Numbered from the stretch's first letter, positions 1,131 through 50,859 are shown. The stretch is 64,000 nucleotides of DNA from Macrostomum lignano (GCA_002269645.1 NIVC01000455.1:186001-250000), one strand, 5' to 3'. Notes: generated from the sequence alone by a model not told the origin. A program made the numbers and translations.

Positions 1131-2197
1131 TTAATATACATATGTATATATAAGTACCCGTTGCGCTCCACAGCGGATAACAACTCGACGCATCCGGTCG
1201 ATATGCGGCTGCATCGACGCTGGGAATTCAAATGCAAGCACGTCGTCAGCTGCGGTGTCAGTAATGTCCATAGTTGAGCTATTAGCTAGCGGTAGAAATT
1301 GGGTGCTGCTCTCGGACTCTTCGTACCAGGTTTTCAGATCTTGAGCAGTGTCGTGAACAGGCGAATACGAAATAGTTGATGATGAGCAACCAAGACAAAG
1401 CGAGCCGGCGTACTCTTGAATCTTGGCTTTTCTAATGGCGACTACGTCTCCTGGTCTCCACAAATGTACCTGGGTAGCAGAGGCGTCCCAGAAGTTGCAA
1501 AAAGTCTGAAAACCAGATTTGTCTACGATGCAGACTTTTGCGAGCTGCACCAACTTTCCGGAACGCGTGTTGACGTCAACGGGTTGTTCCACTTTGACAA
1601 TGACACCGAGAACATCAACAAAACTGAAAATATGAAGAATGAAAATGTGTGAAGTATATATATCTTCCTGTTTATTCTACATTTTGAGGATGGACTTACC
1701 CATTCACTCCAATTCTTGGTAGTTCGGAGAGCGCTTTGAACGGACCATTTATGGGAACTATCGCATCGCTACACTGGCGGAGAGAGTCCTTGTTATCCTC
1801 ATTGATTGACAGAGTAACTTCATGCATATTGCTTGTTCGGTTGAATTTTGGATTAGCACACTTTACCATTCCTTCACGGATGGAGATTGTTTGCCCGTTT
1901 TCGCAAATGCTCCAGTGTTCTTGCAACTCATCGCCAAAAACTGCCACTCTGATTTCACCTGACTCATCTGACATCAAAAACGAAAACCATTTGTTCTTCT
2001 TGCCATCCCTAATCTGGTTTAGTAACAAACGATGTTGTTTAAGTGGATTGATTTTATAAAAAAAGTATATATATGAAGCAAAATAGCAAATTATGGAAGC
2101 TTACCTCAGTTCTTAACGAAGTAATTCCGGAGACTACGCCGCGCATGGGACCGACAGAGAGAGAAGAAATCGTTAACTTGCTTAGCTTGCTTGCCAT
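1131..2197 (-). CDS. Helitron-borne RPA70-like ssDNA-binding protein, two OB folds (exons 2197-2105, 2013-1700, 1623-1131; about 299 aa)
   Basis: FSFLMSDESGEIRVAVF resembles RPA70 DBD-A. FVDVLGVIVKV...IVDKSG...CNFWD resembles DBD-B. GT-AG introns have compatible phases (0 and 2). The true C-terminus is less certain. Confidence 0.75.
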
Positions 2198-2450
2198 CTT
2201 TTAACATAACGATGAAGACAAATTTAATGGAATTTACTACTTGCAGCTAGAAATTCATCTTAAGCTAGAAATGCATCTCAAGCTTATGCATTCCGCGAAA
2301 AATACAGTTTCAGGACACACATTTTCTCATAGACGTTTTGCGTGACAGCATGCACTTTCAATATTTAATCGTGGCTCGTAGTAAAATAGCAACATATTTT
2401 TTTTAAATTGAATTGTAAAAAATTATTAATAGATAATAAAGACGTCCAAT

Positions 2451-3923: not shown

Positions 3924-6900
3924 GAGCGACAGCACACCCGCGCCCAGGTATCAAAAACTAAGAGACACATTCACATGAAATTTTTGAGACCGGTCAACCG
4001 GTTCAGGCCGACAAATAATCGAACAACAAACAGAAGATCAGACAAATCACTCCAATCCAGCACGAATACGAATGAATCGAAGTTGAACAGACTCACCGGT
4101 TGAACTCACCGGTTGAACTCACCTTAAAGAACTTCAAGGTTATAAAATCAATGCGAGAAAAATACACTATATAATTAGCTTTATATATTGAAAGACTTTA
4201 TTTAGACTCGAGCCGCCGCTGCTGCTTTCTTTCTTTCTTTTTCGGGTCACGGACATTGTAGCTAGACGTAGCTAATAGGACCGGGGGCGTAGCCCCATGC
4301 AGCCGGGGCGCTGACCCTGCGCGGGCGGGCAGTAGACGGCGGAATCCAATTTGCGGCCTGCGGCGGGTGGCCAGAGAGCGTGGGGACCCGAGTCCCGGTG
4401 CGCAGGGCTCCTCCGAAGACCGACTTACGCTGTAAAAACCGCCATCCACCGCCAACCCAACGTTGGGGGACAGCTCTCCCAGGCTGCATACCCGGAGGTG
4501 AGACCAATTCGTCACCCCGTCGATGGCAGGGACGCACGGAGCTCCTGCCACATTGGCGGGGTGTCCAGGGGCGCGACTTGGACGCTGGTCTCGTGCCACC
4601 CGCCGCTGCTGCTGCTGCTGATGCTGCGGCCGCGTAGTCAACTTCACGGACCACCATAGATATAAAATTGAAAATTTAACTCTGACTGCGAGAAAAATAC
4701 ACTAATTAGATAGGCGAAATACAGTATTTCTCCAATTTGAGAGGCTTCACACTACGACATCAAAATGAAAATTAGACCACATGGTCCCAGTAGAATTCCA
4801 CATCGAATGAAACAAATTTGACGAAAATCTACCAAGTGGTTCAAGAGGAGATGCGAAACTTATAAACAAAGTTACAAACATTTTCAGATTTAGTATATAA
4901 GATGGACGGATGGATGGATTACCCAGGCTTTAAGGGCCTTCGGCGCCCTCTGGCTTTCCCATTATCGCCCTTAAAACCTGGGATATATAATCTTTGGTTT
5001 AGACCATAAACATAAAAGTGCAGACATCACTTTCCTCCCTTTCCCGGAATGAAACGCATGGGAGGCTTTATCAAAGTCCTGTCTCTCAACCTGTATCCAA
5101 ACACAGGTTGTTCCTGTTGTGTTGTCTCCTAGCTAGTTTTCTTTTAACTATAGGAAAAACTTTTTAGTAATTTTAAGCCCCCAAAGGCTTCATTTCAAAG
5201 GTTAGAGTGTCACGTTATTGGCGTGGTGACTACAACCCTTAAAAGGGCCGTTTTGACGAGATTGTGAAGTCAATTCTTGCGAAGCGGATTGTGTAGCGGA
5301 GCACTTGGCGTATAAAGGCAGGGGACTGCCGTATGCTATTTATTATCGTTATTAATATGATGATTGATTAATGTCAATACAAAACTTATAGCGTTCTGGG
5401 GCACTGGCGGCTGCAACAATGGTTTTGAATGTAATTGGAGTTATGAAGTCAAGTAGTTGACGAAAGATGCAGTGGCGACGCAACGTGGTAAGTGATGGCG
5501 GTGAGCACAGTGATGGCAGTGAGTAGCAAGTAGACAGGCAGACTAGTAGTGGCGAGATTGGGCGTTAGCCCGTGGCAGTACACGGTGGAGTAAGAGTGCG
5601 TAAACAGGCTGGCCCAGACAGAGGGGGCCGTGGCGAGAGATAAGAAGAGAGAAGGAAAACAAGAGGCCACGAAGAAACGCCAAAAAGAAAGGAAGGAAAG
5701 GGAGGAACGGACAGGAAAGTGAAAAAACCCCCAGCCTGCCGCCAGGCGGGGTTAATAAAGGAGCGCAGGAGGGTTAGCATAATATATGCGTAGAGTTATC
5801 ATTGGCTGGCGAGGGAAAAACAAGAAACAGAAATTATCGATCGCGCGAGACCCTACAGCCGTACGCAACGCTTACAAAGTACGCAATGATTTAGCAATTG
5901 ATACAGATTAGTTGCGCGCTACTACAAGTAAACGTGAGAATACACAATTGGAAATTTTAAATGAGAAATTGTAAGGGAAAATTGTAGTCCAACGGCCCTT
6001 TTGCGGGACCACTTTAAACTAGCAACGTCACAAGAGGCATGCGTAAAAATTGTCACTACTGATATCAAGCACTCAGACAAAAGAGAGCAACACTGTGATG
6101 CGACAAAAATCTGATGTATTATCGAGGCCTTTCTAATTTCAGTGCAGAAACACTTCAAGCGCAATTTTTTCCGACTATAAACGTTGATTAGGAGCGCTCG
6201 CGATGTAAATTAAAAGCTGGGTGTGCTTTTACATTGAAATTTAACTGTCGACAGTTACACAGAGCGGGAGTGTCTTTGTCGACTTAGAGAGTTGAGTAGG
6301 AAACAAATGGAAATAAATGGTGTGAATGTGTATAAATTATTTTCTGTTCAAAAAGTTTGGGAAATTCTCTTACACACTGTAAAAACTTGCTGATAGTTTT
6401 GGTGTTGCTGGACCGTCTTTTTTATTTTTTCTTTAATTTTAGCATAAAAATAAAAACTTTTGCATCAAAAAAAGCTTACGTATGCAAAAAAGACGCTTAA
6501 ATGCAGTCTGCATTAAGCATATTTGTTAAAAAACACTCGTTTTTTGAATCGTCGACGGTCTGAATGTCGGTAAATTAATATCCAATCAATCAATCAGTTT
6601 GCATGACTAAAGAGTCTAGTGGAAGACATCTTTACTCCGATTGCTCTACTTGTTCACTTGTCTGTAAATATATTTGTTTCTGTTGTACAGCAGTCCCTCC
6701 AGTGTTGGTCTTTTTTAAAATTCTGTTTGGGTTCACTAGGCCTAACGGACGAGGCCCAAGGCCCAAGCCAAAGTTTTGATAAATAAAACCATTTTGACTG
6801 ATTTCTCGATTTTTTCGAGTTGTAAAAAGACAAATAAATTAATAATACCTGTTATTTTCTAGGGGCCTATGATATTGACTATTATTGAGAGCCACATACG

Positions 6901-17000: not shown

Positions 17001-20000
17001 TGTGTGACAGTGAATGCCTAGCAGTGTGTGACAGTGAATGCCTAGCAGTGTGTGACAGTGAATGCCTAGCAGTGTGTGACAGTGAATGCCTAGCAGTGTG
17101 TGACAGTGAATGCCTAGCAGTGTGTGACAGTGAATGCCTAGCAGTGTGTGACAGTGAATGCCTAGCAGTGTGACAGGGAATACCTAGCAGTGTGACAGGG
17201 AATGCCTGGCAGTGTGACAGGGAATGCTAGCAGTGTGACAGGGAATGCCTAGCAGTGTGACAGGGAATGCCTGGCAGTGTGACAGGGAATGCCTGGCAGT
17301 GTGACAGGGAATGCCTGGCAGTGTGACAGGGAATGCTAGCAGTTTGTCACGGCAGCTCCCCCTGGGTATCTCAAGGGATCTCTAAGTTGCTGCTTCAGCT
17401 CACACGCCGTCACCTCTGCAGGCACTACATGCGGCAGATCCTGGAGGCGGTGCGCTACTGTCACGAGCACAACATCATCCACCGCGACCTGAAGCCGCAC
17501 TGCGTGCTGCTGCACTCCAAGGAGAACTCGGCGCCTGTGAAACTCGGCGGTTTTGGCATCGCCGTACAGCTCGACAGCAGCGGGCTCGTTCCTGGGGTGA
17601 GATCTCACCTGAGATTTTGTTTGCTTTTTCTTGCTGCTCTGTCTTATAGATGTGTCTTATAGTTCACCTGCCATCACGATCTTTGTCTCATTCAGCTGTG
17701 ATCCCTATCACATGATATGTGATCCCTATCTCATGATCTGTGATCCCTACCCCATGATTTGTTATCCCTATCCCATGATCTGTGACCCCTACCCCATGAT
17801 CTGTGATCCCTATTCCATGATCTTTGATCCCTATCCCATGATCTATGATCCCTACCCCATGAGCTGTGATCCCTATCCTATGATCTGTAATCCCTATCCC
17901 ATGAGCTGTAATCCCTATCCCATGAGCTGTGATCCCTATCCCATGATCTGTGATCTCTATCCCATGATCTGTGATCCCTATCCCATGATCTGTGATCCCT
18001 ATCCCATGATCTGTGATCCCTATCCCATGATCTGTGATCCCTATCCCATGATCTGTGATCCCTATCCCACTATCCCATGATCTGTGATCCCTATCCCATG
18101 ATCTGTGGTCCCTATCCCATGATCTGTGATCTCTATCCCATGATCTGTGATCCCTATCCCATGATCTGTGATCCCTATCCCATGATCTGTGATCCCTATC
18201 CCATGATCTGTGATCCGTATTCCATGATCTGTGATCCCTATCCCATGATCTGTGATCCGTATTCCATGATCTGTGATCCCTATCCCATGATCTGTGATCC
18301 CTATCCCACAATCCCATGATCTGTGATCCGTATTCCATGATCTGTGATCCCTATCCCATGATCTGTGATCCGTATTCCATGATCTGTGATCCCTATCCCA
18401 TGATCTGTGATCCCTATCCCACTATCCCATGATCTTTGACCCCTATCCCATGATCTGTGATCCCTATCCCATGATCTGTGATCTCTATCAAATGATCTGT
18501 GATCCCTATCCCATGATCTGTGATCCCTATCCCATGATCTGTGATCCCTATCCTATGATCTGTGATCCCTATCCCATGATCTGTGATCCCTATCCCATGA
18601 TCTGTGATCTCTATCCCATGATCTGTGATCCCTATCCCATGATCTGTGATCCCTATCCCATGATCTGTGATCCCTATCCCATGATCTGTGATCCCTATCC
18701 CATGATCTGTGATCCCTATCCCATGATCTGTGATCCCTATCCCATGATCTGTGATCCGTATTCCATGATCTGTGATCCGTATTCCATGATCTGTGATCCC
18801 TATCCCATGATCTGTGATCCCTATCCCATGATCTGTGATCCCTATCCCATGATCTTTGACCCCTATCCCATGATCTGTGATCCCTATCCCATGATCTGTG
18901 GTCCCTATTCAATGATCTGTGATCCGTATTCCATGATCTGTGATCCCTATCCCATGATCTGTGATCCCTATCCCATGATCTGTGATCCCTATCCCATGAT
19001 CTTTGACCCCTATCCCATGATCTGTGATCCCTATCCCATGATCTGTGGTCCCTATTCCATGATCTGTGAACCCTATCCCACTATCCCATGATCTGTGATC
19101 CCTATCCCATGATCTGTGGTCCCTATTCCATGATCTGTGAACCCTATCCCACTATCCCATGATCTGTGATCCCTATCCCATGAGCTGTAGTTTTGGTCCT
19201 AAGAGTTTCAAAAAACGTAAAATATTCGAAATGGTTGATAATTGTGAAGTCTGTCCGGATGAGGCCTCACACCGCCCAGTCATGCACTCGTAGATTCTAA
19301 GAAACTGCTTTAATTTGGCTTCAACTTAGTACTCTTGATGTTTGTTCTGCTTCTGTGTGAATCGAAATAGTTTTGTCAATTGTAGAAGTGAATTTTTTTT
19401 CATTTACTATGCAATATTTTTTCTGCAACACTTCCGCTATTTTATTGCTTTTGCTGCTTGTACTTTAAATTTTTACAGTATCTGGCTGGACTATCAGCAC
19501 TGGCAGAACTCTGAGTTATGCTGAGTTGTGTTACTGCCGCACATTCTGCACTCGGGTTTCGTTTCACCTGCCTCCCGATTCTCAGTGTCTCATCTCACCT
19601 ATCTCCCCTATTCTCAGTGTCTCATCTCACCTGTCTCCCCTATTCTCAGTGTCTCATCTCACCTGTCTCCCCTATTCTCAGTGTCTCATCTCACCTGTCT
19701 CCCCTATTCTCAGTGTCTCATCTCACCTGTCTCCCCTATTCTCAGTGTCTCATCTCACCTGTCTCCCCTATTCTCAGTGTCTCATCTCACCTGTCTCCCC
19801 TATTCTCAGTGTCTCATCTCACCTGTCTCCCCTATTCTCAGTGTCTCATCTTACTTGTCTCCCCTATTCTCAGTTTCTCATCTCACCTGTCTCTTCGATT
19901 GTCAGTCTCTCATCTCACCTGCCTCCCGATTCTCAGTCTCTCATCTCACCTATCTCCCCGATTCTCAGTCTCTAATCTTACCTGCCCCCCGGTTCTTAGT

Positions 20001-21330
20001 CTCTCATCTCACGTGTCTTCCCGATTCTCAATCTTTCATCTCATCTGTCTCCCAGATTCTTAATCTCTTATCTCACCTGCCTCCCAATTCTCCAACTCTT
20101 GTCTTTCCTTCACAGAATCTAGATGATAGAAGATACTTTGAAAATTTTGAAGGAGAATTCAATAAGACCTGATAAATCTGCTTGCCAACCTGCCTCTCCC
20201 CTCTGCCCGCAACCGCGCGCTTATTGCAGACACTCCAGTTAAAGTAGAGCAGGAAATCTTTGTGAGCCTGAGAGATGACCAGCTGGGTAAGAAGCTGCAC
20301 AACTGTTTAACTAAACAACACGGTGCTGTGTGTGTGTATGATAACTGATGTGGCCAAAGGGTTTGAGGACTTGAGCTTTGCCGTGTGCTGCTGCTATGCC
20401 TTACAGCTTTTGTTCTTCATTCTGATTTCTCATTTCATGTTTTCATAATTTTATTCTCGGTTAATTATTATAATTAGCCTAACAGCAATAACCGGCTGGC
20501 TATGGCGGATTATCTAATAAGCGCATTCAAAGAAAGCGTTGGCTTATAATCTTATTTGACCCCCCAATTTGTTCTTTGGTTGTTTAATCCGGTGTTAATC
20601 TTCAATTTCCTTTAAACGCTGCGTTGCCACACTACTGACTGCTTGTAGTAGTGAGTAGTGATACACAGAGATAATATTACAGTAGACCAGAATTTTAACT
20701 GCTTGTGTGAGCTTCAGTTTTTTGTTTTAAATTTATTTTGCATGGCTCAGTTTTGTTATAATTTAAAAGGCGCCGCTCGCTAGTCAAATTTAAAAAATCC
20801 TAAACTTGACCGATTTGAACTAGACTTGAGCTGGCTTATAGTGCCTGGATTCGCTTCAAAAGCAAAGCTCTCGTGTCTGTAGGATTTAACCGCATTAATA
20901 GTTTATAGATTACTATTTATATACAGTAGAATTTTATAATAAAAGCATTTCACCACACCGTGCCATCCGCATAGGCCGCATCGGCACGCCGCACTTCATG
21001 GCGCCCGAAGTCATTCGGCGGGAGCCCTACGGCAAGCCGGTGGACGCCTGGGGCTGCGGAGTCCTGCTGTACATCCTGTTGACCGGCTCGCTGCCCTTCT
21101 ACGGCACCAAGGATGTGCTGTTCAGGCAGATTCTCAGCGGCCGGTATCGGGTGAGTGGCTGTCCTCTACTTATAGTGGCTCGTGGTAGCAAGAATTTAAT
21201 TAGCCTTCATCCCCAAGCAGTAGTACTAGTAGTAGTAATAGTAGTAGTAGTAATAGTAGTACTAGTACTAGTGGTAGTAGTAGCAGTAGTAGTAGTAGCA
21301 GTAGTAGTAGTGTAGTAGTAGTTGTAGTGA

Positions 21331-27300: not shown

Positions 27301-29105
27301 AGGGCCACACTCTGAATTCTCCCAGTGCCACACTCTGAATTCTCCCAGTGCCACACTCTGAATTCCCCCAGTGCCACACTCTGAATTCCCCCCAGTGTCA
27401 CACTCTGAATTTCCCCAGTGCTGCACTCTGAACTCCCTCAGTGCCACACTCTGAATTTCCTCAGGGCCACACTCTGAATTCTCCCAGTGCCACACTCTGA
27501 ATTCTCCCAGTGCCACACTCTGAATTCTCTCAGGGCCACACTCTGAATTCCCTCAGTGCCACATTCTCAATTCCCTCAGTGCCACATTCTCAATTCCCTT
27601 ATTGAACTGTAGTATTAAATTGTTTTTTTAATCTAATTGACTAACTGTTTTAATGTAAATACAAAGTGCATCGTGTACTACGAAAGCTGATCCTCAACCC
27701 GTCCCGGCCACTTCCCCAGCTGTACGATCACATCAACAGTCGCAATCTGAGCGGCTCGGCCATTCGCGGACAGATCCCGGACAAAGCGGTCAGCCTCGGC
27801 CGGGACGTTCTCGACAGCATCGGCCAGTGCCGCTCCAGGGAGTTCTACAGCGACTGCATGGAGCTGCGGGAGCTGCTGCTGCAGCCGCACTTCAGGGTGA
27901 GCAGCTGCCGGGGTGCGGGCGATGAGGGAGAATTGAGGCCGCACTGAATCGAATTGTCAGTTATCAGTGTCGCGCTGTCTGCGTGGCGCCAAAATAGCCT
28001 TTCTTAGCGCCAAAATATCCCTTTCTTGGCGCCAAAATATCCCTTCTTTCTTGGCGCCAAAATATCCCTTCTTTCTTGGCGCCAAAATACCCCTTCTTTC
28101 TTGGCGCCAAAATAGCCCTTCTTTCTTGGCGCCAAAATACCCCTTCTTGGCGCTAGACAGCCTCTTAGCGCCAAAATACCCCTTCTTGGCATAAAAATAC
28201 CCCTTCTTGCTTGGCGCCAAAATACCCCTTCTTTCTTGGCGCCAAAATAGCCCTTCTTTCTTGGCGCCAAAATACCCCTTCTTGGCGCTAGACAGCCTCT
28301 TAGCGCCAAAATACCCCTTCTTGGCATAAAAATACCCCTTCTTGCTTGGCGCCAAAATACCCCTTCTTTCTTGGCGCCAAAAATACCCCTTCTTTCTTGG
28401 CGCCAAAATACCCCTTCTTGGCGCTAGACAGCCTCTTAGCGCCAAAATACCTCTTCTTGGCATAAAAATACCCCTTCTTGCTTGGCGCCAAAATACCCCT
28501 TCTAGGCGCCAAAATACTCGTTCTTGGTACTAAAATACCCCTTCTAGGCGTTACACAGCCTCCTTTGCGCCAAAATATATCTCTTCTTGGCGCCATGCAG
28601 CTTCCGTGGCCCTAAAATACCCCTCCTTCCAGCATGCCCAGGCACCCATTCTTTCACACTGGTGCGCCTTCATCAGCCAAAATGGCTCCAGGCCGCAGAA
28701 AGGCAGTTTGAATCCGCGAATTGCAAAAACATTTTAGCGTTTTTCCACCAGCCACTTCTGTGCCTGGGAACTTTTATTGTCACTTTTTTATGCAGAATTT
28801 ACAACTGCAAGAGTGTGCAGCCCGCATGAAGTGGCTGGTCCGGCACGGCGCCTGCAGACTGACAATTTCATGTCTCTCCCCCTGTGGGCATTAATCTTCT
28901 GACTGCGGGAGTCTCTCCGTGCCAGCATGCAGACAGACTGTGCTGTGTCCGGCTTTTCCCAACACCGCCTCTGCCAAATGGATGCCCTGCAGAGTCTGGG
29001 CTGCTCGATCGATTGGGAGAGTAGAATTTGACTGACTGACTGACTGACTGACTGACTGACTGACTGACTGACTGACTGACTGACTGACTGACTGACGGAC
29101 TGACT

Positions 29106-29137
<32 letters not shown>

Positions 29138-30231
29138 GACTGACTGACTGACTGACTGACTGACTGACTGACTGACTGACTGACTGACTGACTGACTGAC
29201 TGACTGACTGACTGACTGACTGACTTGAGTGAGTGGGTGACTGACTGACTGACTGACTGACTGACTGACTGACTTGAGTGAGTGGGTGACTGACTGACTG
29301 ACTGACTGACTGACTGACTGACTGACTGACTGACTGACTGACTGACTGACTGACTGACTGACTGACTGACTGACTGACTGACTGACTGACTGACTGACTG
29401 ACTGACTTGAGTGAGTGGGTGACTGACTGACTGACTGACTGACTGACTGACTGACTGACTGCCTGCCTGACTGACTGACTGGCTGACTGACTGACTGCCT
29501 GCCTGACTGACTGACTTGAGTGAGTGGGTGACTGACTGACTGACTGACTGACTGACAGGCAGGCAGAGAGGAAAATTCCGATGGAACGGGGAGAGCCGCA
29601 GCTGCCTGTCAGCAGTTGTGTGCTGTTGCTAATCCAGCAGAGATTGGATTAATAAAAGTATGCTTCGCGTGGGATTTTTCGCTTCGACCCACCGGCCACC
29701 CCAGCCGTGCGCTGCGCTTGTTCGGCGCGATTCGCTTCTGCTGCGAATCGGGGGTCCCGGCCCGCCCCCTCCCTTCCTGGTCGCCTCCTCGCGCATAAAT
29801 TCCGAGCTGCCCAGCGCCAGGTCCTGAGGTAGGAAAAACCCGAAAGCTCAGTTGTTGGCTGTCAGAAGAGGCCTTGCTTAGCAGCGATCGATCAATCGGA
29901 ATTCGGAGCTGCTCCTGAGTAGCGGCCAGGGGATTTTGATGCAGCCCGCGGCAGCTGGCCAGCTGCTCTGCCAGTGCGAGCGGTGCCGCCCCCGCTGCCG
30001 GCAGCTGCTCGCCCCGCAGTGCGGGCTGAGTAAGGATGACCTCGTCATCTGGGTGAGCGCCTGCCTGTGTCTGTCTGTCTGCCTGTCTGCCTGCCTGTCT
30101 GTCCGTCTGTCTGCCTGTCTGTCTGTCTGCCTGTCTGCCTGTCTGCCTGCCTGCCTGCCTGCCTGCCTGTCTGTCTGTCTTAGTGTCTGTCTGTCTGTGT
30201 GTCTGTTCTAGTGTCTGTCCGTCTGTCTTAG

Positions 30232-30264
<33 letters not shown>

Positions 30265-33200
30265 TTCTGACTGTCTTAGCGTCTGTCAGTCCATCATTAT
30301 TTGTTTATTTTCCCACCATATATTCCCAGCCATTAACACCAGCCCAGAAGGCTTCCACAAGTTCTCCAATGCAAGTAGTGCAGAATTATTGAGAGCTAAC
30401 AGTGAATAAAATTATTTTTTTAACAATAGTGCAGTGCCTTGAGGTCAGTTAACTAGCATTTTGACCGAACATTTTTGCCTGACTGACTTTGAGAATTTGT
30501 GGCTTTGGCAAGCCTTGCTCTGCAGCAGTGCCCGATCGTTATCAGCGGGTGCAGCCGTATGCAATGGTGATGCACTGGAGAGCCGGCCTCGTATCGGCCA
30601 GTGATTGCTTTTTCACATTAGTATTGATCTGGCTTTCACACTGGCTTCCTTATTGGCGCCACACTGACTTCCCTGTTGGCGCCACACTGGCTTCCTTATT
30701 ACCAGACTGCATAGGTTCCTTTTGGCGCCACACTGGTTTCTTCATGGGCGCCACACTGGCTTCCCTATCGGCGCCACACTGGCTGCATTTTTGGCGCCAC
30801 ACTGGCTGTCTTTTTGGCGCCAAACTGGCTGTCTTTTTGGCGCCAAACTGGCTGTCTTTTTGGCGCCACACTGGCTGTCTTTTTGGCGCCACACTAGCTG
30901 TCTTTTTGGTGCCACACTGGCTTCCTTATGGGTGCCACACTGACTTCCTTATTGGCGCCACACTGTTTTACTTTTGGGCGCCACACTGGTTTACTTATGG
31001 GCGCCACACTGGTTTACTTATGGGCGCCACACTGGTTTCTTGATGGACGCCACACTGGTTTCCTTATGGGCGCCACACTGGTTTCTTTATGGGCGCCACA
31101 CTGGTTTCTTTATGGGCGCCACACTGGTTTACTTATGGGCGCCACACTGGTTTCCTTATGGGCGCCACACTAGTTTCTTGATGGGCGCCACACTGGTTTC
31201 TTTATGGGCGCCACACTGGCTTCCCCATCGGCGCCACACTGGCTTCCCTATCGGCGCCACACTGGTTTCCTTATGGGCGCCACACTGGTTTCCTTATTGG
31301 CGCCACACTGGTTTACTTATGGGCGCCACACTGGTTTCCTTATGGGCGCCACACTAGTTTCTTGATGGGCGCCACACTGGTTTCTTTATGGGCGCCACAC
31401 TGGCTTCCCCATCGGCGCCACACTGGCTTCCTTATCGGCGCCACACTGGTTTCCTTATTGGCGCCACACTGGTTTAATTATGGGCGCCACACTGGTTTCC
31501 TTATGGGCGCCACACTAGTTTCTTTTTGGGCGCCACACTGGTTTCTTTATGGGCGCCACACTGGTTTCTTTATGGGCGCCACACTGGCTTCCCCATCGGC
31601 GCCACACTGGCTTCCCCATCGGCGCCACACTGGCTTCCCCATCGGCGCCACACTGGCTTCCCCATCGGCGCCACATACTGACTGCTTAATAAATGATATT
31701 CAAACAAAACTCTAGAGCCAATCCTATATTTCCCACTAAATCCTACCCTTAACTCTGCAGGCGCTCCTTCAAGCCCACGACGTGCTCGCCCACGACGTGT
31801 ACAGCGACCAGGCCATCCGGGTGACCCCGCCGCCGCTGTCCTCCTACCTGAACGGCGACATTGCCGACGAAGGTGGCCTGGACGCCGAACCCGACAATGT
31901 CACCCGAGTCAGGCTGGTGCAGTTTCAGAAGAACACCAATGAGCCAATGGTGGGTTTTCAATTACACTTTTATGGCTGTGCAGAGGGACAATTAAGCTAG
32001 TGGGGATTGTGTGAGTGAGCGAGAGACTGAGTGAGTGACTGAGTGAGTGAGTGACTGAGTGAATGAGTGAGTGACTCAGTGAATGAGTATACCTGTGCAA
32101 CTCCCGCTCAGCAAGTTGTCAAACTTTGATAAGAAAATTCTGAGTTTACTAACCGCTGTCAGCTCTGCTTAACTTTCAACGGTTCTGATCATTCTTAGTG
32201 TATTGATAATCACAAATCCCAACATGCTAAATAGCTCTTGTACTGACACACCTCTTTACCTGTGGGCATACTGTAACTTAAGCCATCACTCCTTCGCTTT
32301 ACTTTGCGTTTCTTTTTGCGTTTTCTACAAGCAAAGCGCATTAGCCATGATTGCTGCACCGCATTTACCAGCTCACCCCTCTCCACTGCGCAGGGCATCA
32401 CGCTGAAAATGTCCGAGGAGAACAAGATTATCGTGGCCAGGATTATGCACGGCGGCATGATTCACAGGCAGGGTAAGACTGCCGTTCACAGGTTTAGATT
32501 GTGCAGTGCAGGGGGTTCAAATCCTGCAAATTGACGTTTGATTTTGGAATCCGAATTTACGGGTCCCCATCTTCATGGATCCCCAACTTCACGTATCCCC
32601 ATCTTCACGGATCCCCATCTTCATGGATCCCCAACTTCACGGATCCTCAATCTTCTCGGATCCCCAACTCCACGGATCCTCAATCTTCTCGGATCCCCAT
32701 CTTCACGGATCCTTAATCTTCACGGATCCTTAATCTTCACGGATCCTCTATCTTTAGAGATCCTTAATCTTCGCGGATCCCCATCTTCACGGATCCTTAA
32801 TCTTCACGGATCCCCATCTTCATGGATCCCCAACTTCACGGATCCTCAATCTTCTCGGATCCCCATCTTCACGGATCCCCATCTTCACGGATCCCCAACT
32901 TCACGGATCCCCATCTTCATGGATCCCCATCTTCACGGATCCCCATCTTCACGGATCCCCATCTTCACGGATCCCCATCTTCATGGATCCCCATCTTCAC
33001 GGATCCCCATCTTCACGGATCCCCATCTTCATGGATCCCCATCTTCACGGATCCCCAACTTCACGGATCCCCATCTTCATGGATCCCCATCTTCACGGAT
33101 CCCCAACTTCACGGATCCCCATCTTCACGGATCCTCAATCTTCATGGATCCTTAATCTTCACGGATCCTCAATCTTCACGGATCCTCAATCTTCACGGAT

Positions 33201-36200
33201 CCCCATCTTCACGGATCCCCAACTTCACGGATCCCCATCTTCATGGATCCCCAACTTCACGGATCCCCATCTTCATGGATCCCCATCTTCACGGATCCCC
33301 ATCTTCACGGATCCCCATCTTCACGGATCCTTAATCTTCATGGATCCCCATCTTCATGGATCCCCATCTTCACGGATCCCCAACTTCACGGATCCCCATC
33401 TTCACGGATCCTCAATCTTCATGGATCCTTTATCTTCACGGATCCTCAATCTTCACGGATCCTCAATCTTCACGGATCCCCATCTTCATGGATCCCCAAC
33501 TTCACGGATCCCCATCTTCATGGATCCCCATCTTCACGGATCCCCATCTTCACGGATCCTCAATCTTCATGGATCCCCATCTTCACGGATCCCCATCTTC
33601 ACGGATCCCCAACTTCACGGATCCTTAATCTTCATGGATCCCCATCTTCACGGATCCCCAACTTCACGGATCCCCATCTTCATGGATCCCCATCTTCACG
33701 GATCCCCAACTTCACGGATCCCCATCTTCACGGATCCTCAATCTTCATGGATCCTTAATCTTCACGGATCCTCAATCTTTATGGATCCTTAATCTTCACG
33801 GATCCTCAATCTTCATGGATCCTTAATCTTCACGGATCCTCAATCTTCACGGATCCTCAATCTTCATGGATCCTTAATCTTCATGGATCCTTAATCTTCA
33901 CAAATCCTTAATCTTCACGGATCCTCAATCTTCGTGGATCCTCAATCTTCACGGATCCTCAATCTTCATGGATCCTTAATCTTCACGGATCCTCAATCTT
34001 CGCGGATCTTTAATCTTCATGGATTCCTCCATATCTTCAGGGATCCCTGATTCGCTATCTTCACGGACTCCCATATTCACGAATCCCTCATCTCCACTGA
34101 CTCCCATATTCACCGATTCCTGATTTTCGTAATTCCAATCTTAATTAGTCACTATCCAGGCAACAGCATAAAGGCAATAAACTTTTAGGTTTTTTATATC
34201 TTATAACATTTAAAGAAACGTGCATTTCTACTTTTAAGTAGCGTAACTAAGATGTCTGCGAATTCTATGATGTTTTTATTATAAAATATTTTCAAGGCAC
34301 GCTTCATGTTGGCGACGAGATTCGAGAAATCAATGGCGAGCCGGTGCTTGGCCAGTCCGTTGAGGCTCTGCAGCGACTGCTGGTGAGTTTTGGCCCCTAA
34401 ATGCTTGTGTTATTTTGCTTTACATGTGGTTGTGTCAGATTAGCTTTATTAGAGCACTCCGATTCAGTCATTCACCTCAGTTTCATTTATAATAATGAAA
34501 ATATTAATTTTCTGCAGTATGTCTCTGACATATGCTGTTTTGTCTACTGTCAGTAGCGTGTCCGGAGCATTGACCTACAGGCTATTATCTATCGTGTTTA
34601 TTAAATTCGCAGAAATCTCTACGCGGCATGGTGACAATAAAAATTGTGCCAAGCCTTTGCGCGCCTAAGACAGTGTGCCAATCGTTCAAGGAGGTAAACT
34701 TGGTGATTTCTTTGTGCGGGTTGGTGTGCTACTGTGTATGAGAGGTCTGTGTGGGGGGGGAGTAGACAGGTCAGATTAGAGTAGATAAGTGCGAGGAGAG
34801 TAGACAGGTGAGATGAGCGTAGACAGGTGTGTTAGAAGTAGACAGGTGAGGTAGAGAGGTAGCCAGGTGAGGTAGAGAGGTGGACAGGTGAGGTAGAGAA
34901 GTAGACAGGTGAGGTAGAGAAGTAGACAGGTGAGGTAGAGAAGTAGACAGGTGAGGTAGAGAGGTAGCCAGGTGAGGTAGAGAGGTGGACAGGTGAGGTA
35001 GAGAGGTGGACAGGTGAGGTAGAGAAGTAGACAGGTGAGGTAGAGAGGTGGACAGGTGAGGTAGAGAGGTAGCCAGGTGAGGTAGAGAGGTGGACAGGTG
35101 AGGTAGAGAGGTGGACAGGTGAGGTAGAGAAGTAGACAGGTGAGGTAGAGAAGTAGACAGGTGAGGTAGAGAAGTAGACAGGTGAGGTAGAGAGGTAGCC
35201 AGGTGAGGTAGAGAGGTGGACAGGTGAGGTAGAGAGGTGGACAGGTGAGGTAGAGAAGTAGACAGGTGAGGTAGAGAAGTAGACAGGTGAGGTAGAGAGG
35301 TAGCCAGGTGAGGTAGAGAGGTGGACAGGTGAGGTAGAGAGGTAGACAGGTGAGGTAGAGAAGTAGACAGGTGAGGTAGAGAGGTAGCCAGGTGAGGTAG
35401 AGAGGTGGACAGGTGAGGTAGAGAAGTAGACAGGTGAGGTAGAGAAGTAGACAGGTGAGGTAGAGAGGTAGCCAGGTGAGGTAGAGAGGTGGACAGGTGA
35501 GGTAGAGAAGTAGACAGGTGAGGTAGAGAAGTAGACAGGTGAGGTAGAGAGGTAGCCAGGTGAGGTAGAGAGGTGGACAGGTGAGGTAGAGAGGTAGACA
35601 GGTGGTATGAGAGTAGACTGGAGGGATGAGGTAGACAGGGTAGGGAGACAGTAGACAGAGAGGGGAAATCAGAGCAGGTGGACAGCACAAGGTGAGTAAC
35701 CAATGGATGATGCAGCTGTGAGTGCAATCAGCATCTTTGTCCAGCTGCTGGTGATGTAGTTGGCTTACAATTGCTACGGCAGATGCTGAAGCTGTGCAAT
35801 GGGACTCCGCAGTCTCCGATGGAATGGCTTTTGCATTCAGCACTGCAGCAATGAAAATGTATTGTATAGCTGCTTCAATAAATTTCTACTTTTTATTCAC
35901 TTTAATAACCAGTGACTCCTGATATGATTTTGGTTATTAAAGTCTCACAGAATGTTTATGTCACTCACTAATATAAAATCATTATCTTATTTATCCTAGT
36001 CACGGTTCTGAGTGCACTCTATCCCCACTGCTCTTAACATTGAGCTATGGTTAGAGTTTATCATTTAGTTAATTTATATCTCACCTTATTGATAATAATT
36101 ATAAGTGTGCTTGGCTTTTGGTGCATTGTTCCATTTTGTAAAGCATTTTCAACTCACTTGCTCTGATTATGGTTTGTTTATGATCGACTGCTGACATGCA

Positions 36201-39200
36201 TTTTATACATATTATCATGAGCGATTTGTATGTACTGTACACTATCATGAGCAATGTACATGTCCTGTACACATAACCATGAGCAATGTACACGCATTGT
36301 ACACACTATCATGAGCAATGTACATGCACTGTACACATAATCATGAGCAATGTACATGCACTGTACACAATATCATGAGCAATTTACATGCACTGTACAC
36401 ATTATCATGAGCAATGTACATGCATTGTACACAATATCATGAGCAATGTACATGCACTGTACACATTATCATGAGCAATGTACATGCACTGTACACATTA
36501 TCATGAGCAATGTACATGCATTGTACACAATATCATGAGCAATGTACATGCACTGTACACATTATCATGAGCAATGTACATGCACTGTACACATTATCAT
36601 GAGCAATGTACATGCACTGTACACATTATCATGAGCAATGTACATGTCCTGTACACACTGTCATGAGCAATGTACATGCACTGTACACACTATCATGAGC
36701 AATGTACATATAAGTATGCATTATTATAGACAGTATACAAGTTATTTTCATTGTACAAATATAGCATGCGCATTGTCGTGTGGAATGTGCATAAATTATG
36801 TACATGCGATCAAGCTCAGTCAAATCGGTGGGAAGGCAGTGCTGTTTTAATAATTTACAAGTATTGCCTATATTTTCTAGTTTATTCTCCCACACTGCGC
36901 TTTTTCTAAGAAATCAATTTTCCTATTGGCTAATCGGAGTGCTCCCGCAACAGCAGGCGACCCTGCTCAGTTCTTAGATGCAATCGAGTCGTGAATCGCA
37001 GGCTTATTACTTTAATTTTCTAAACACATTTCAGAAAGAGGCTCGGGGCAGCGTCACTTTGAAAATTGTACCCAGCTACCGAAATCACCCAATGCAGTGC
37101 GAGGTATACCAGCAATCATGGATTCCATCACATTCACGGGTGCATTCACTCACGAATTCACTCATTATGGATTCACTCATTCACCTCATTCACTGATTCA
37201 CTCATTCACGGATGCATTCATTCACGAATTCACTCATTACGGATGCATTCATTCATGGGTTCACTCATTCACGGATGCATTCATTCACTAATACATTCAT
37301 TCACGGATGCATTCATTCACGGGTTCACTCATTCACGGATGCATTCATTCACGATTTCACTCATTCACGGATGCATTCATTCACTAATACATTCATTCAC
37401 GGGTTCACTCATTCACGGATGCATTCATTCACGATTTCACTCATTCACGGATGCATTCATTCACTAATACATTCATTCACGGATGCATTCATTCACGGGT
37501 TCACTCATTCACGGATGCATTCATTCACGATTTCACTCATTCACGGATGCATTCATTCACTAATACATTCATTCACGGATGCATTCATTCACGGGTTCAC
37601 TCATTCACGGATGCATTCATTCACGATTTCACTCATTCACGGATGCATTCATTCACTAATACATTCATTCACGGATGCATTCATTCACGGGTTCACTCAT
37701 TCACGGATGCATTCATTCACGAATTCACTCATTCACGGATGCATTCATTCACTAATACATTCATTCACGGATGCATTCATTCACGGGTTCACTCATTCAC
37801 GGATGCATTCATTCACGAATTCACTCATTCACGGATGCATTCATTCACTAATACATTCATTCACGGATGCATTCATTCACGGGTTCACTCATTCACGGAT
37901 GCATTCATTCACGATTTCACTGATTTATTCACGGATGCATTCATTCACGAGTTCATTCATTTATGGGTTCACTCATTCACTAATACATTCATTCACGGCT
38001 TCACTCATTCATGTGTTCAGTCATTCATGGATACATTAATTCACGGCTTCACTCATTCATGGGTTCAGTCATTCATGGATACATTAATTCACGGGTTCAC
38101 TCATTTGCCTAATCACCGACTCGTTCATAGATCCACAAAATTCAGTCTTTCATTTATCAACTCCTTCAATCGCGTGTTGAAATTTATGATTATGAAAAAC
38201 TTGCTCGCTTATTGGCTTCTGTTGTGCGACCTCTGATTGACCATTCCAATTTTTAAGTTGATTTGGATATTTCTATTTTTTAATTGCTAAATCTTACAGC
38301 CCTGCACTAAGTTCGATTTTCTTTTATACTAAACAGCATTAAATCACGTGAATTGATCTAGTTTTCCCATCAAAATTCCCGATCGTATAATTCACGAAGA
38401 CTGTATATTCTGTAATTTTTCTGTCCCGGAATCTGTAAGAATCAGGGTTCGAGATCAGGCTCGCCCATCTGTGCATGAATACACAGTCCTGTGTTTACCG
38501 ACTGGGCACTCTCCCAGATCCTTAGTTGCTGGGCCAGCCTCCCAGATCCTCAGTTGCTGGGCCAGCCTCCCAGATCCTCAGTTGGTGGGCCAGCTTCCCA
38601 GATCCTCAGTTGCTGGGCCAGCCTCGCAGATCCTCAGTTGGTGGGCCAGCCTCCCAGATCCTCAGTTGCTGGGCCAGCCTCCCAGATCCTCAGTTGGTGG
38701 GCCAGCTTCCCAGATCCTCAGTTGCTGGGCCAGCCTCGCAGATCCTCAGTTGGTGGGCCAGCCTCCCAGATCCTCAGTTGCTGGGCCAGCCTCCCAGATC
38801 CTCAGTTGGTGGGCCAGCCTCCCAGATCCTCAGTTGCTGGGCCAGCCTCCCAGATCCTCAGTTGGTGGGCCAGCCTCCCAGATCCTCAGGTGCTGGGCCA
38901 GCTTCCCATATCACTTCATGATTGTAGTGCTACTAAATTCATGCATTATAAATGTCGCCCATCTGCGCATAAACATGAAATTCTGCTGTTCATTTCCAAT
39001 ATGTTAGTTTTTTAAACCTTTTTTAATGTCATAGACTTAAGTTGACTAATTAGTAGCAACATTAATGTTACTTTAATAGTGCTAGTTAGCTTGCAAATGT
39101 GATCAGTGCTCCTTTCTGGTTTGAATAATATGTGAACTGAATGATTTTTAATAAATTTTTAACCACCGTTTTGTCTACTTACAGTCTAAGTGTCAGTAGC

Positions 39201-41959: not shown

Positions 41960-42250
41960 ACTATTTCGGTCACGTGATTCACCGCAAAATTTCCGGATTT
42001 TTGGGTCACGTGACCCCCTTGTTAAAATCTTTGAGGGTCACGTGACCCCCATGTTAAAATCTTTGAGGGTCACGTGACCCCTCTTGATCAAATCTTAGGC
42101 CAATGTGACCCCCTATAAAACTTTTGAGGGTCACGTGACCCCTCTTGATCAAATCTGAGGCCAATGTAAAAAGATCTGAGGGTCAAGTGACCCCTTTAGG
42201 TGATTGGGTCGCGTAGCCCCCAAGCTGTACATGTACAGGGGTCACGTGAC
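41960..42250. repeat. Cluster of palindromic GGGTCACGTGACCC repeats about 30-33 bp apart
   Basis: Perfect 14-bp palindromes, e.g. 42003-42016 and 42067-42080, plus variants. Confidence 0.85.
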
Positions 42251-42804
42251 GGTCTTGAAGAATTCCTATTTACTACACCGTTAAGCATAAACCTTTTACG
42301 CTCGTGTTTAAACTTTTATATTTCTACATAGTTATTAATATGCTATTGTGTACAATGAACAAACAAATCAATTTTAGTTGTCAATATTTGCTTATAATTG
42401 GTTTTTGTCATGTTTTCAATTATAAATTATCAGCCTGATTGATTGGCATTGTGCTCTATTAATTCTGTGTACATAGCTAGGCCTTGAGCCACTGGCTCTG
42501 CCGCTTCAAATTCTTTGTTTGGTAATTTCTTTTGTTTTTGTCTGTGTCATGTACGGCGCCTCTTATTTCATTATTAATCAGTTATATCGCTATATTGTCA
42601 TGCTGATTGATTTCGGCGCATGTTGTTAGTTATTATGAGCCTTATTTTTTATCCATGCAAATAATGCAACATTTCTGTTTGATACCTGTGTGACATTATG
42701 ATCATTGGGTAAAGAGACTTAACTTTGTCTTTGTTAGATGTGCATGCTTGCGAAGTATTTCTCGATTCAAATATTTTGTGCTCATACTCGTAGAATTTCA
42801 ATAG

Positions 42805-44172
42805 AGTGCTCATAGACTATTGGTCATAGAGTGCTAATAGACTATTGGTCGTAGAGTGCTCATAGACTATTGGTCGTAGAGTGCTCATAGACTATTGGTC
42901 GTAGAGTGCTCATATACTATTGGTCATTGAGTGCTAATAGACTATTGGTCGTAGAGTGCTAATAGACTATTGGTCGTAGAGTGCTCATAGACTATTGGTC
43001 ATAAAGTGCTCATATACTATTGGTCATAGAGTGCTAATAGACTATTGGTCGTAGAGTGCTCATAGACTATTGGTCGTAGAGTGCTCATAGACTATTCGTC
43101 ATAGAGTGCTCATAGACTATTGGTCATAGAGTGCTCATAGACTATTGGTCATAGAGTGATAATAGACTATTGTTCATAGAGTGCTAATAGACTATTGGTC
43201 GTAGAGTGCTCATAGACTATTGGTCATAGAGTGCTCATATACTATTGGTCATAGAGTGCTAATAGACTATTGGTCGTAGAGTGCTCATGGAGTATTGGTC
43301 ATAGAGTGCTCATAGACTATTCGTCATAGAGTGCTCATAGACTATTGGTCATAGAGTGCTCATAGACTATTGGTCGTAGAGTGCTCATAGACTATTCGTC
43401 ATAGAGTGCTCATAGACTATTGGTCATAGAGTGCTCATAGACTATTGGTCATAGAGTGATAATAGACTATTGTTTAGAGTGCTCATACGAAATAGACTAT
43501 TGGTCAGAGTGCTCATAGACTATTGGTCAGAGTGCTCATAGACTATTGGTCAGAGTGCTCATAGACTATTGGTCAGAGTGCTCATAGACTATTGGTCATA
43601 GTGCTCATAGACTATTGGTCAGAGTGCTCATAGACTATTGGTCATAGAGTGCTCATAGACTATTGGTCATAGAGTGATAATAGACTATTGTTCATAGAGT
43701 GCTAATAGACTATTGGTCGTAGAGTGCTCATAGACTATTGGTCATAGAGTGCTCATATACTATTGGTCATAGAGTGCTAATAGACTATTGGTCGTAGAGT
43801 GCTCATGGACTATTGGTCATAGAGTGCTCATAGACTATTCGTCATAGAGTGCTCATAGACTATTGGTCATAGAGTGCTCATAGACTATTGGTCGTAGAGT
43901 GCTCATAGACTATTCGTCATAGAGTGCTCATAGACTATTGGTCATAGAGTGCTCATAGACTATTGGTCATAGAGTGATAATAGACTATTGTTTAGAGTGC
44001 TCATACGAAATAGACTATTGGTCAGAGTGCTCATAGACTATTGGTCATAGAATGATAATAGACTATTGTTTAGAGTGCTCATACGAAATAGACTATTGGT
44101 CAGAGTGCTCATAGACTATTGGTCAGAGTGCTCATAGACTATTGGTCAGAGTGCTCATAGACTATTGGTCAT
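42805..44172 (+). repeat. Minisatellite, 25-bp unit ATAGACTATTGGTCATAGAGTGCTC (23-bp variants)
   Basis: Intergenic; inverted relative of 47158-48140. Confidence 0.97.
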
Positions 44173-44924
44173 ATAGTTTGCCAGTTATAGAGCATGAATA
44201 ACTTATATTTCAAATCAATAAAATTCTGTCTAATGAATTGCAGAAGGCAGGCCAATTTTCACTTATCGAGCTTCAGCACTATGCAATGCGGCAGTCGCTA
44301 CTGTTAGTAATATCTGCTCGCTGATGGCTCCCTTCCATTTCTGTCGATATTTCGTCTATTAACTTATTGTTTACGCGTAGCTATAAGCATTAATTTTTGG
44401 CAGAAATATTTAAATACATATTTATAACTGCGCAACCATCCTGCGATTGCAAATGGCTGATTTTAAACTATTTAGCTTTATGTGACTCGCCTCTGCTTAT
44501 TTGGGCTGTCAGTGCTGCCCCAAACCACAGGCCTTGAAAGCCTTTCAATGCCTCTCAATATGTGCATAATTGCCGTCTCAGGAAGTTCATTTTCCTATTC
44601 AACATAAATCGGGTGACCGACCCTCTAAGCTGCTGTCTCGCTGACGAAACGAGCCTTTAAAGGGTTTCCGAGAAACAATTGACAAAGAAGAGAAATGCTG
44701 AATACTGTATTATTTTCATACTGAACTTTTCTGTTTATTTAATCCTCAGCAGATTATCGATAATAATGTAGTGGATGTTTAAAGCATTAATAATAATTAA
44801 TTATCAAGTAATTTGACGCTTGAACCGCAGTTTGTGGGAATTTTACACGCGCAGATTGGGTTGAGGTGCTTTGTGGAATTTCAGGAAGGACTTTTGGCTG
44901 CTGCTAGATCAGTTATAGAGCCCT

Positions 44925-45295
44925 AATTAAGTTAGTTATAGTGCCTTAGGTCAATTAAGGTGCCCTAATTAGGTCAGTTATATTGGCCTAATTAGGTCAG
45001 TTACAGTGCCCTAATTAGGTCAGTTATATTGGCCTAATTAGGTCAGTTATAGTGCCCTAATTAGGTCAGTTTTATTGCCCTAATTAGGTCAGTTACAGTG
45101 CCCTAATTAGGTCAGTTTTATTGCCCTAATTAGGTCAGTTATAGTGCCCTAATTAGGTCAGTTTTATTGCCCTAATTAGGTCAGTATATATTGGCCTAAT
45201 TAGGTCAGTTATAGTGCCCTACTTAGGTCAGTTTTATTGCCCTAATTAGGTCAGTTATATTTCCCTAATTAGGTAAGTTACAGTGCCCTAATTAG
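44925..45295. repeat. Minisatellite, 23-bp unit CCCTAATTAGGTCAGTTATAGTG
   Basis: About 13 perfect CCTAATTAGG palindromes. Confidence 0.95.
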
Positions 45296-49000: not shown

Positions 49001-50859
49001 AGCGACGCCCCTTGAAGTATAGTGATTGCCCCTAGAAAACAGCGGTGCCCCCTGAAGGACGGCGGCGGCGCCAACCTGATCAGGTAGGTGGCACTGAAAT
49101 CGCCCTGGCTGTAGGCTTGGCGCAGCTCAGGCTCCGGCGGCGCCGGGTAGCCGTCAGAGTCGAACGAGCAGCTGACGGGGCTGGGCTGCGGGTAGCCGAA
49201 CACCTTCACCTGCGGGCGGGTGCGTGCGATCACCCGTGAGGGAGAAATTGGGAAGACAAGGAGATGAGAGGTAAGAGAATAAAACTGAGGTGGAGAGGGA
49301 AGAGGGTGTTTCTCAGTGATTCTCGTAGGGATTATAGTGATTCCAATCGGGAGGGATTCTCACGGGAAGCGATTCTCACGGGGAGTGATTCTCACGGGGA
49401 GTGATTCTCACGGGGAGCGATTCTCACGGGGAGTGATTCTCACGGGGAGCGATTCTCACGGGGAGTGATTCTCACGGGGAGTGACCATTATTCTCATGCT
49501 GATTCTCATGGGTAGTAACCATTATTCTCATGGGTAGTGACCATTATTCTCATGGGTAGTGACCATTATTCTCATGGGTAGTGACCATATTCTCATGGGT
49601 AGTGACCATTATTCTCATGGGTAGTGACCATTATTCTCATGGGTAGTGACCATTATTCTCATGGGTAGTGACCATTATTCTCATGGGTAGTGACCATTAT
49701 TCTCATGGGTAGTGACCATTATTCTCATGATGATTCTCATGGGTAGTGAGAGCTATTCTCTAGCGAAGCGTCTGCCCAGCTGATGCGGTAACCGTTCGCA
49801 GACCTGCAACTGCCTTATGCTCTGAGTCAACTCTCCCCAAGCTTCAATGGGATTTCTCAAGCACCGGAGCAGAACGCGCGCGGTTTTTCTGGGTCGAAGA
49901 ATGAAGCTTCAACCAGCCATCAAACGGGTTCGGGATTGAGTTGTTGTTGATCAACTCAATTCCCCGATTGCCCCACCGAGTTGGCTGCCGATTCCGGGGG
50001 TTCTGGGGATCAGCCAGAGGATCAGGGCAGCAGCAGATTAGCCTTCTGCAGAGAAGAAAGCAGTTACGTCATCATTTGGGATTATCAGTTTGAGAGGAGA
50101 AAGAGGGGGGGGCAAGAACCTGACTCGAGAGCCCAGCCTCCGGCTGCATCCGCTGCTGCCTTCTGCCTCATCCCCGGCCTTCTTGGCAGCGAAGCGAGAA
50201 ACTGGAGAGGCGGAGGCGCCCAGGAGCTCAGGGGTGAGCAGTAGCTGGGTGCGCTCTGACTGGATTTGAAACAAAGAAATTCGCATATAAAAAGTTCATG
50301 AATACTGCATGAACGACCACCTCTTGCAGTCCAGATCTCTCCATCCAGCACTCCATGGTCAGGGGGTTACACAGATAAGGAATCAAAACAATTCGTGGCC
50401 TTGCCTACAGAATATTCCCAATTCCCCTCTTTGCTTTTCCCTCTCCCATTAGCGATTCCCCATGGCTGGATGACTTTCGGCCCTCCGGCTGTTGGTCACC
50501 TTTCCTGCCCCTCTCGGTTCGGCGCCTCTGACTCGGCCGCTTCCTGCTGCAGCACCTCTGCTGCCGGGGTCAGCGACTCACGATGGGCAGCCCATAGACT
50601 CACTGGGATCAAATTCGTGCAGGGGGGAATAATGCAAAGTTGTGCAAAACAATGGGGTGTCTCGTCTGAGAGGAGTTCTGTCCCTCTTGCTCGCGGCTGA
50701 CTCACCTTGCACTGCCTCATCTGCCTCCTCTCCTCTCTTCTCCTCTCCTCTCCTCTCCTCTCCTCTCCTCTCCTCTCCTCTCCTCTCCTCCCTCTCCTCT
50801 CTCCCTCTCTCCTCTCCTCTCCTCTCCTCTCCTCTCTCTCCTCCCCTCTCCTCTCTCTC

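Follow-up and report, generated by a model that had tools for sequence, protein, structure and literature searches.

The window, which denotes the whole 64-kb stretch of Macrostomum lignano DNA analyzed here (GCA_002269645.1, NIVC01000455.1:186001-250000), contains a complete CASK gene on the + strand at 7034-41622, as delimited by tblastn probe mapping and splice-site refinement. This locus (L007) corresponds to gene Mlig001372.g1 on contig NIVC01000455.1, to which the island described below is 100% identical. CaMK, two L27, PDZ, SH3 and GUK domains were observed in this order, which identifies the gene as CASK, and Pkinase, L27, PDZ and Guanylate_kin were found on the annotated M. lignano CASK copies in precomputed Pfam results. 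The top protein match was M. lignano CASK with 97% identity (99.5% over aligned residues), followed by a paralogue at 80% and by the CASK proteins of Lineus, flukes and vertebrates at 63-67%. At least three CASK paralogue types, 87-90% identical in the GUK segment, were detected in the assembly (L001-L004 and L006-L008), each represented by two or three near-identical copies, in keeping with the hidden polyploidy reported for this species, and a fourth, more distant type (about 80%) was seen only as protein P0242.

Several other features of the locus were observed. The last PDZ strand is encoded in two exon versions, at 34613-34693 and 37035-37103, which may form an alternative or mutually exclusive pair; annotated window-type products use only the version at 37035-37103, and P0242 and P0243 from other paralogues hold both in tandem. 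Alternative donor/acceptor pairs at 37103/37139, 39234/39255 and 41204/41219 give +/-19 residues between PDZ and SH3, and the annotated CASK copies differ in splice form, with 931 aa in P0121 and P0455 versus 950 aa in P0454, the product of the window's gene. At 17594-17600 / 20973-20976, where the annotated protein reads ...LVPGGRIG..., no GT-AG pair preserves the frame; this reading needs an exon end after CCTGGGG (TG next) or an acceptor moved by one base, and thus either a non-canonical junction or a one-base assembly error common to L001 is indicated. Upstream of CASK, the minus strand at 1134-3950 contains long ORFs that by eye resemble Helitron-type proteins, with a putative PIF1-like helicase tail at 2454-3206 and RPA-like OB-fold segments at 1134-2100, in a region 98% identical in L001. 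In the CASK locus of Opisthorchis felineus (L005), a P-type cation ATPase gene is annotated at 42156-45167 on the minus strand, opposite to CASK, between the fluke L27-1 exon (38443-38568) and the ALLQAHD exon (49464-49655), and tblastn did not locate the L27-2 exon of the fluke.

The candidate element lies inside the 3.9-kb intron between the L27-2 exon and the exon beginning with ALLQAHD, both boundaries of which are phase 0, and the position of the intron before ALLQAHD is kept across animals. The features of this region are as follows:

27720-27896, + strand: constitutive L27-2 exon of full-length CASK, ending ...LLLQPHFR in phase 0 with the donor AGG/GTGAGC (tblastn mapping and splice-site refinement, in agreement with the annotated products P0121/P0454)
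29029-29556, no strand: (TGAC)n microsatellite (TRF), incidental, missing around the homologous exon in L003
29557-29938, + strand: unique GC- and CpG-rich island, putative promoter and 5' UTR of a short transcript (composition)
29939-30052, + strand: candidate alternative first coding exon of 38 codons (translation, comparison with copies and a paralogue)
30053-30058, + strand: phase-0 splice donor GTGAGC (PWM 7.0; GTAAGC in L003/L008)
30068-30276, no strand: (TGTC)n microsatellite (TRF), adjoining the donor, incidental, missing in L003
30328-30337, + strand: intronic 10-mer AGCCATTAAC (consensus AGCYATTAAC), one copy per locus in the window and L001-L004
31761-31949, + strand: ALLQAHD acceptor exon, ending NTNEPM in phase 0, used by the long isoform and by the proposed short one

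The two microsatellite arrays flank a unique stretch of 511 nt (29557-30067) with a GC content of 0.62 and a CpG o/e of 0.85 against a background of 0.58, and within it the segment 29660-29830 reaches 67% GC and a CpG o/e of 1.12 versus 0.58 for the whole window. The initial annotation, made from the sequence alone, had singled out this segment as a GC-rich unique island between two microsatellites, with a GC-box-like motif and CATAAAT inside it, and composition and TRF results agree with that description: the GC-box-like CCCGCCCCCTCCC is located at 29761-29773 and the TATA-like CATAAAT at 29794-29800. The island is conserved in L001, L006 and L007 (the window itself). A repeat or transposon origin was discarded, as a second copy is absent from the window, and a structured RNA or miRNA at 29925-30075 was likewise rejected, with an Rfam mir-598 match of 25.8 bits against a gathering score of 69 and a fold z-score of -0.83 against shuffled sequence.

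Further downstream in the same intron, AGCYATTAAC occurs as a single copy in each of five Macrostomum CASK loci, in each case on the + strand and within the intron that precedes ALLQAHD (window 30328-30337, L001 27737, L002 29320, L003 9335 and L004 10187), with no further copy on either strand in about 217 kb of the window and L001-L004. The 10-mer is followed by CAG within 5-13 nt in a branch-point/acceptor-like arrangement and is possibly a regulatory or splice-site element of the intron; it is present also in the L002/L004 type, which carries no mini-exon, and lies 93 nt upstream of the mini-exon in L003 and 276 nt downstream of it in the window.

The same annotation had placed after the island an ATG at 29939, a 38-codon ORF running to 30052 and a phase-0 GTGAGC donor, all of which are present on translation, and the in-frame splice to ALLQAHDV at 31761, predicted to yield a protein of about 510 aa with PDZ, SH3 and GUK, was reproduced in silico. 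The donor at 30053 scores 7.0 on a generic PWM, an average value within the range of -1.6 to 11.4 shown by the real donors of this gene, and fits the M. lignano cis-donor motif GT[GA]AG (PMC8629364), while the acceptor at 31761 reads ctgcag/GCGCTCCTT and opens the ALLQAHDV sequence. An in-frame TAG occurs at 29879, the frame is open from 29882 to 30052, and no ATG is found between CATAAAT and 29939. When spliced as in the annotated near-identical copy, the short product comprises 510 aa with intact PDZ (91-167), SH3 (181-225) and GuK (319-494) domains and neither L27 nor kinase; in silico, a unique N-terminal exon is thus joined in frame to the exon before PDZ, bypassing CaMK and L27, as expected of a CASK-alpha/MPP1-like short isoform.

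Taken by itself, the ORF at 29939-30052 is only weakly indicative of more than chance: none of the six frames is closed by a stop codon there, and an open minus frame spans the whole island. Combinations of an ATG-ORF with a phase-0 donor are infrequent without being rare, with 4 counted in 31.7 kb of CASK introns (about 0.13 per kb) at a donor score of at least 6 and a length of at least 5 codons, and the candidate is the sole such combination in its intron in the window, in L001 and in L003 alike.

The evidence that carries the interpretation comes from the diverged paralogue represented by L003 and L008, which is 90.5% identical to the window in the GUK segment and differs from it, over 68 conserved codons in L003, at 44% of third positions, 7% of first positions and 3% of second positions. 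The L003 intron before ALLQAHD is 5 kb long and cannot be aligned with that of the window except for one 28-nt match. In this homologous intron and on the same strand, L003 and L008 contain a homologous mini-exon of the form taa-ATG-MLCGHRDDIVLW-GTAAGC in phase 0, which in L003 reads taa/ATG CTG TGC GGC CAT CGA GAC GAT ATT GTC CTG TGG/GTAAGC and ends 272 nt before the ALLQAHD exon. The last six codons encode DDLVIW in the window and DDIVLW in L003, with 2, 0 and 4 differences at the first, second and third codon positions, respectively; within them, GAT/GAC and GAC/GAT are synonymous and the other changes are Leu/Ile swaps, and GGG/GGC outside them is synonymous as well. The 60-nt flanks of this core show random identity between the window and L003 (0.22 and 0.32). 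The ATG, the frame and the donor are kept in all five loci of the window and L003/L008 types, and since TAA directly abuts the ATG in L003/L008, the conserved frame can be read only from the ATG of the mini-exon, which points to a first coding exon and not to an in-frame cassette. These comparisons support the view that the ORF and its donor form a conserved coding element and not a chance ORF.

Conservation of the complete 38-aa peptide, which had been proposed as a test of the prediction, holds only in part. The conserved core covers 30020-30052 (11 residues) and is kept in L003/L008, whereas residues 1-27 are lineage-specific and occur only in window-type copies. No equivalent exon was found in the L002/L004 type, whose intron consists of 886 or 1115 nt of minisatellite, and none was recognizable in the CASK of Opisthorchis felineus. 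A tblastn match of the peptide to the antisense of kinase exon 3, obtained in all loci (42-56% over 16-26 aa), was judged a compositional coincidence.

Among the window-type copies, the 38-aa ORF is identical in L006 and L007, and L001 has a 33-aa in-frame variant that differs from the window by a complex indel with a net in-frame gap of 15 nt. Window and L001 differ per 100 nt at about 2 positions in the unique intron, 1.8 in exon tiles and 1.55 in the island; because intron, exons and island all differ at about 1.5-2 per 100 nt, the near-identical copies carry little information on selection. L006 shows 10 changes from the window in 29557-29793, 1 in 29794-30058 and 0 in the ORF (Fisher p=0.004, with boundaries chosen after the fact). 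A separate observation concerns 29997-30028, inside the candidate ORF, which is reverse-complementary to 27882-27911 (the final 15 nt of the L27-2 exon and the donor behind it) at 27/31 positions with one gap. No other place in the 64 kb matches the island as well, the score being 40 as against 29 for the runner-up and 29 for the highest-scoring of 300 shuffles. The complementary segment overlaps the 15 nt that L001 lacks, and it has the appearance of a templated (template-switch) insertion rather than of a pairing conserved in the pre-mRNA.

The five cysteines with basic neighbors, which the initial annotation had read as a palmitoylation or metal-binding membrane anchor, did not withstand the comparison, since the cluster is not conserved: five cysteines are present in the window, L006 and L007, four in L001, where the missing one was removed by the indel, and one in L003/L008. 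The paralogues share a single cysteine, the one in the C-G pair that precedes the DD[LI]V[LI]W block. Window-type copies alone have the Cys-rich 27 residues, which vary among them by the 15-nt in-frame complex indel, and comparison of the copies shows this part as a young, variable extension and not the conserved core. N-terminal palmitoylation motifs are known in PSD-95 (MDCLC) and GAP-43 (MLCC); the L003-type exon begins with MLCG, placing a cysteine at position 3 after Met-Leu on a MAGUK, whereas the conserved cysteine of the window type is at residue 28 and not near the N-terminus. It may be speculated that the conserved N-terminal cysteine is acylated.

The reading favored here, with a probability of roughly 0.6, is that an M. 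lignano CASK gene has at 29939-30052 a genuine alternative 5' coding exon, so far unannotated, for a CASK-alpha/MPP1-like short isoform, with a putative promoter in the island. A transcript would begin inside the intron between the L27-2 and ALLQAHD exons, translation would start at the ATG at 29939, and splicing would join the phase-0 donor at 30053 with the acceptor at 31761, skipping the L27-2 exon (27720-27896) together with everything upstream. The product, 510 aa long, would have PDZ, SH3 and GUK domains, would lack CaMK and L27, and would be a flatworm counterpart of Drosophila CASK-alpha and vertebrate MPP1/p55. From the sequence comparisons, we infer that both the transcript and the protein of this short isoform exist. 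The interpretation in the initial annotation is partly supported: the coding exon, which is conserved, and the in-frame 510-aa product are retained, the promoter and the expressed isoform stay putative, and the five-Cys anchor finds no support.

For the 5' end of this transcript, we infer a promoter in the GC-rich island (29557-29830). A TATA-like element is located about 145-150 nt before the ATG in both the window and L003, and a CpG-undepleted patch lies just upstream of the exon in both paralogues, with an o/e of 0.85-1.12 in the window and 0.93 in L003 as compared with 0.52-0.58 for the intron; the Drosophila precedent is likewise a downstream promoter (PMC3608901). An improbable but live alternative, slightly ahead of the other rivals, accepts the exon as real and coding and dispenses with the island promoter, the 5' end being supplied by spliced-leader (SL) trans-splicing, in which a long pre-mRNA begun at the main CASK promoter would receive the leader at an acceptor 5' of the ATG, or by a non-coding exon further upstream. 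About 30% of M. lignano genes undergo SL trans-splicing with an SL ending in ATG (PMC8629364), and in L003 a strong polypyrimidine-AG (ctgtctctctctctctccccgaaag) precedes the ATG by 24 nt and CTACAG, which fits the SL acceptor motif [TC]TNCAG, precedes it by 70 nt; the window, however, contains no [TC]TNCAG between the in-frame TAG at 29879 and the ATG. In favor of this alternative, conservation of a promoter element in register was not found between the window and L003, whose 11 shared 8-mers (null mean 3.4, maximum 14) are all out of register, and CpG-rich patches are common in the window, where 18 stretches satisfy a comparable island criterion, among them several ordinary CASK exons; the TATA-like element and the CpG-undepleted patch, each found in both paralogues, speak for the island promoter instead.

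Two further observations relate to this region. TAATCC and GGATTA, which are K50-homeodomain-type sites, occur as a pair 290-460 nt before the mini-exon ATG in both the window and L003 (8970-9044 in the latter); in the window they form an inverted repeat at 29630-29651 within the island, and the rarity of the 6-mers is the only statistic attached to the pair. The ALLQAHD acceptor itself (ctgcag/GCG, window 31755-31763) fits the SL acceptor motif [TC]TNCAG, and as the 35-nt SL ends in ATG, trans-splicing at 31761 would read ATG/GCG CTC..., i.e., MALLQAHDV in frame, so that a second route to a kinase-less product without any first exon is conceivable.

It is improbable, to a slightly greater degree, that the element is a non-functional chance ORF in a GC-rich intron and its likeness to L003 a coincidence or a decaying relic. 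Besides the six open frames and the closeness of the near-identical copies, which are too similar to reveal selection, such an origin would suit the short conserved block of only about 11 codons, the poor ATG context in the window and the L003-type paralogue (T at -3 and C at +4), the lack of the exon in L002/L004 and the absence of the peptide from every protein database searched. The peptide is absent from the predicted and annotated proteins covered, comprising 5.8 billion clustered proteins, 1.84 billion representatives and all annotated M. lignano CASK products, a negative that is weak because only the longest product per gene is on record. No match covering the peptide was returned by exhaustive HMMER with the 38 aa against the 1.84 billion representatives or by a word-indexed search with a 524-aa version of the short product, and a word-indexed protein search with a 101-aa chimera gave nothing over the peptide, weakly so, as it reached only proteins of at most 168 aa and missed the CASK of the species itself. 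Against chance, the L003 site scores 39 with the window peptide, 5.4 sd above the mean of peptides adjacent to 506 GTRAG sites on both strands of five loci (mean 10.5, sd 5.2, best unrelated 25), and it does so in the homologous intron and on the correct strand; the two paralogues agree in ATG, frame, phase and donor, identity in the flanks is at the random level whereas the core has changed only synonymously or conservatively, and the junction is the same as that of arthropod short isoforms.

Least probable is a role in the full-length pre-mRNA, as a cassette or poison exon in its interior or as a decoy 5' splice site. In the window type, a 168-nt in-frame cassette from the acceptor ttgcttagcag/CGATCG at 29885 would add 56 residues to the L27-2 domain; in the L003 type, inclusion would lead to a stop codon. 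Such a role would suit the phase 0 of both neighboring exons, the several AGs on codon boundaries in the frame open over 29882-30052 and the acceptor-like site upstream of the exon in L003. On the other side, the insert occurs in no annotated product, L003/L008 could not use an in-frame cassette, since TAA directly precedes the ATG and acceptor and donor would be 59 nt apart, and the substitutions follow the frame of the ATG, although neither a poison exon nor a decoy site requires an amino-acid frame to be conserved.

The preferred reading, an alternative first coding exon of a short CASK isoform, has a close parallel in Drosophila, where the Cask gene encodes full-length CASK-beta and, from a downstream promoter, CASK-alpha, which has a short unique N-terminus followed by PDZ-SH3-GUK and has been described as MPP1/p55-like (PMC4075472, PMC3608901). 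The short CASK-alpha without CaMK, named as precedent in the initial annotation, is thus borne out by these reports. In Cask/caki, as in the arrangement proposed here, a single gene has two start sites and two families of products, of which the short one lacks CaMK and L27; the CASK-alpha transcript and protein have been demonstrated experimentally, whereas the candidate M. lignano exon is supported by sequence conservation, and the lineages differ, Drosophila belonging to Ecdysozoa and M. lignano to Platyhelminthes.

If transcribed, the exon would mean that M. lignano, a transgenic regeneration model, has an MPP1/p55-like scaffold made from its CASK genes, and an unannotated coding exon would be added to at least five M. 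lignano loci. The two-start CASK-beta/CASK-alpha architecture, so far characterized in Drosophila, would be placed in a lophotrochozoan, the intron concerned being the one used in arthropods, and its occurrence there would bear on the relation between the CASK and MPP1 genes of vertebrates. Vertebrate MPP1/p55 resembles the predicted product in having an N-terminal stretch, PDZ, SH3, HOOK and GUK and no CaMK or L27, and it is reportedly palmitoylated, but it is a separate gene and not a CASK isoform. In C. elegans, the CASK orthologue lin-2 is also said to yield a short isoform, LIN-2B, whose product lacks most of the CaMK domain; LIN-2B keeps the L27 region, unlike the predicted flatworm short form.

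In a protein search, many predicted arthropod short CASK isoforms were found to have unique N-termini joined exactly at ALLQAHDV, such as MWQLYCSTSCNR/ALLQAHDV in Periplaneta (isoform X9); MDLTWKNW/ALLQAHDV in Schistocerca (X4); and ...MLCY/ALLQAHDV in six malacostracan species, with isoforms listed from Cherax (X2), Penaeus (X3), Scylla (X10), Macrobrachium and Oratosquilla. Like the flatworm candidate, these isoforms have a unique N-terminal exon at the same phase-0 intron and comprise PDZ-SH3-GUK in 478-661 aa, and several carry a cysteine near the junction or the start, the malacostracan ...MLCY resembling the L003-type MLCG; they are pipeline predictions, however, and their N-termini cannot be aligned with those of the flatworm beyond the tripeptide MLC, which could be chance. 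It is a distant prospect, offered as conjecture, that two-start CASK, with the first exon of an MPP1-like short form in the phase-0 intron before ALLQAHD, is ancestral to protostomes or bilaterians, that an N-terminal Met-Leu-Cys acylation leader common to the flatworm MLCG and malacostracan MLCY exons is ancient and that vertebrate MPP1/p55 represents such an isoform turned into a separate gene. As the junction is shared with the arthropod isoforms and the intron is conserved, the predicted M. lignano short isoform would represent a known architecture at a known junction in a new phylum.
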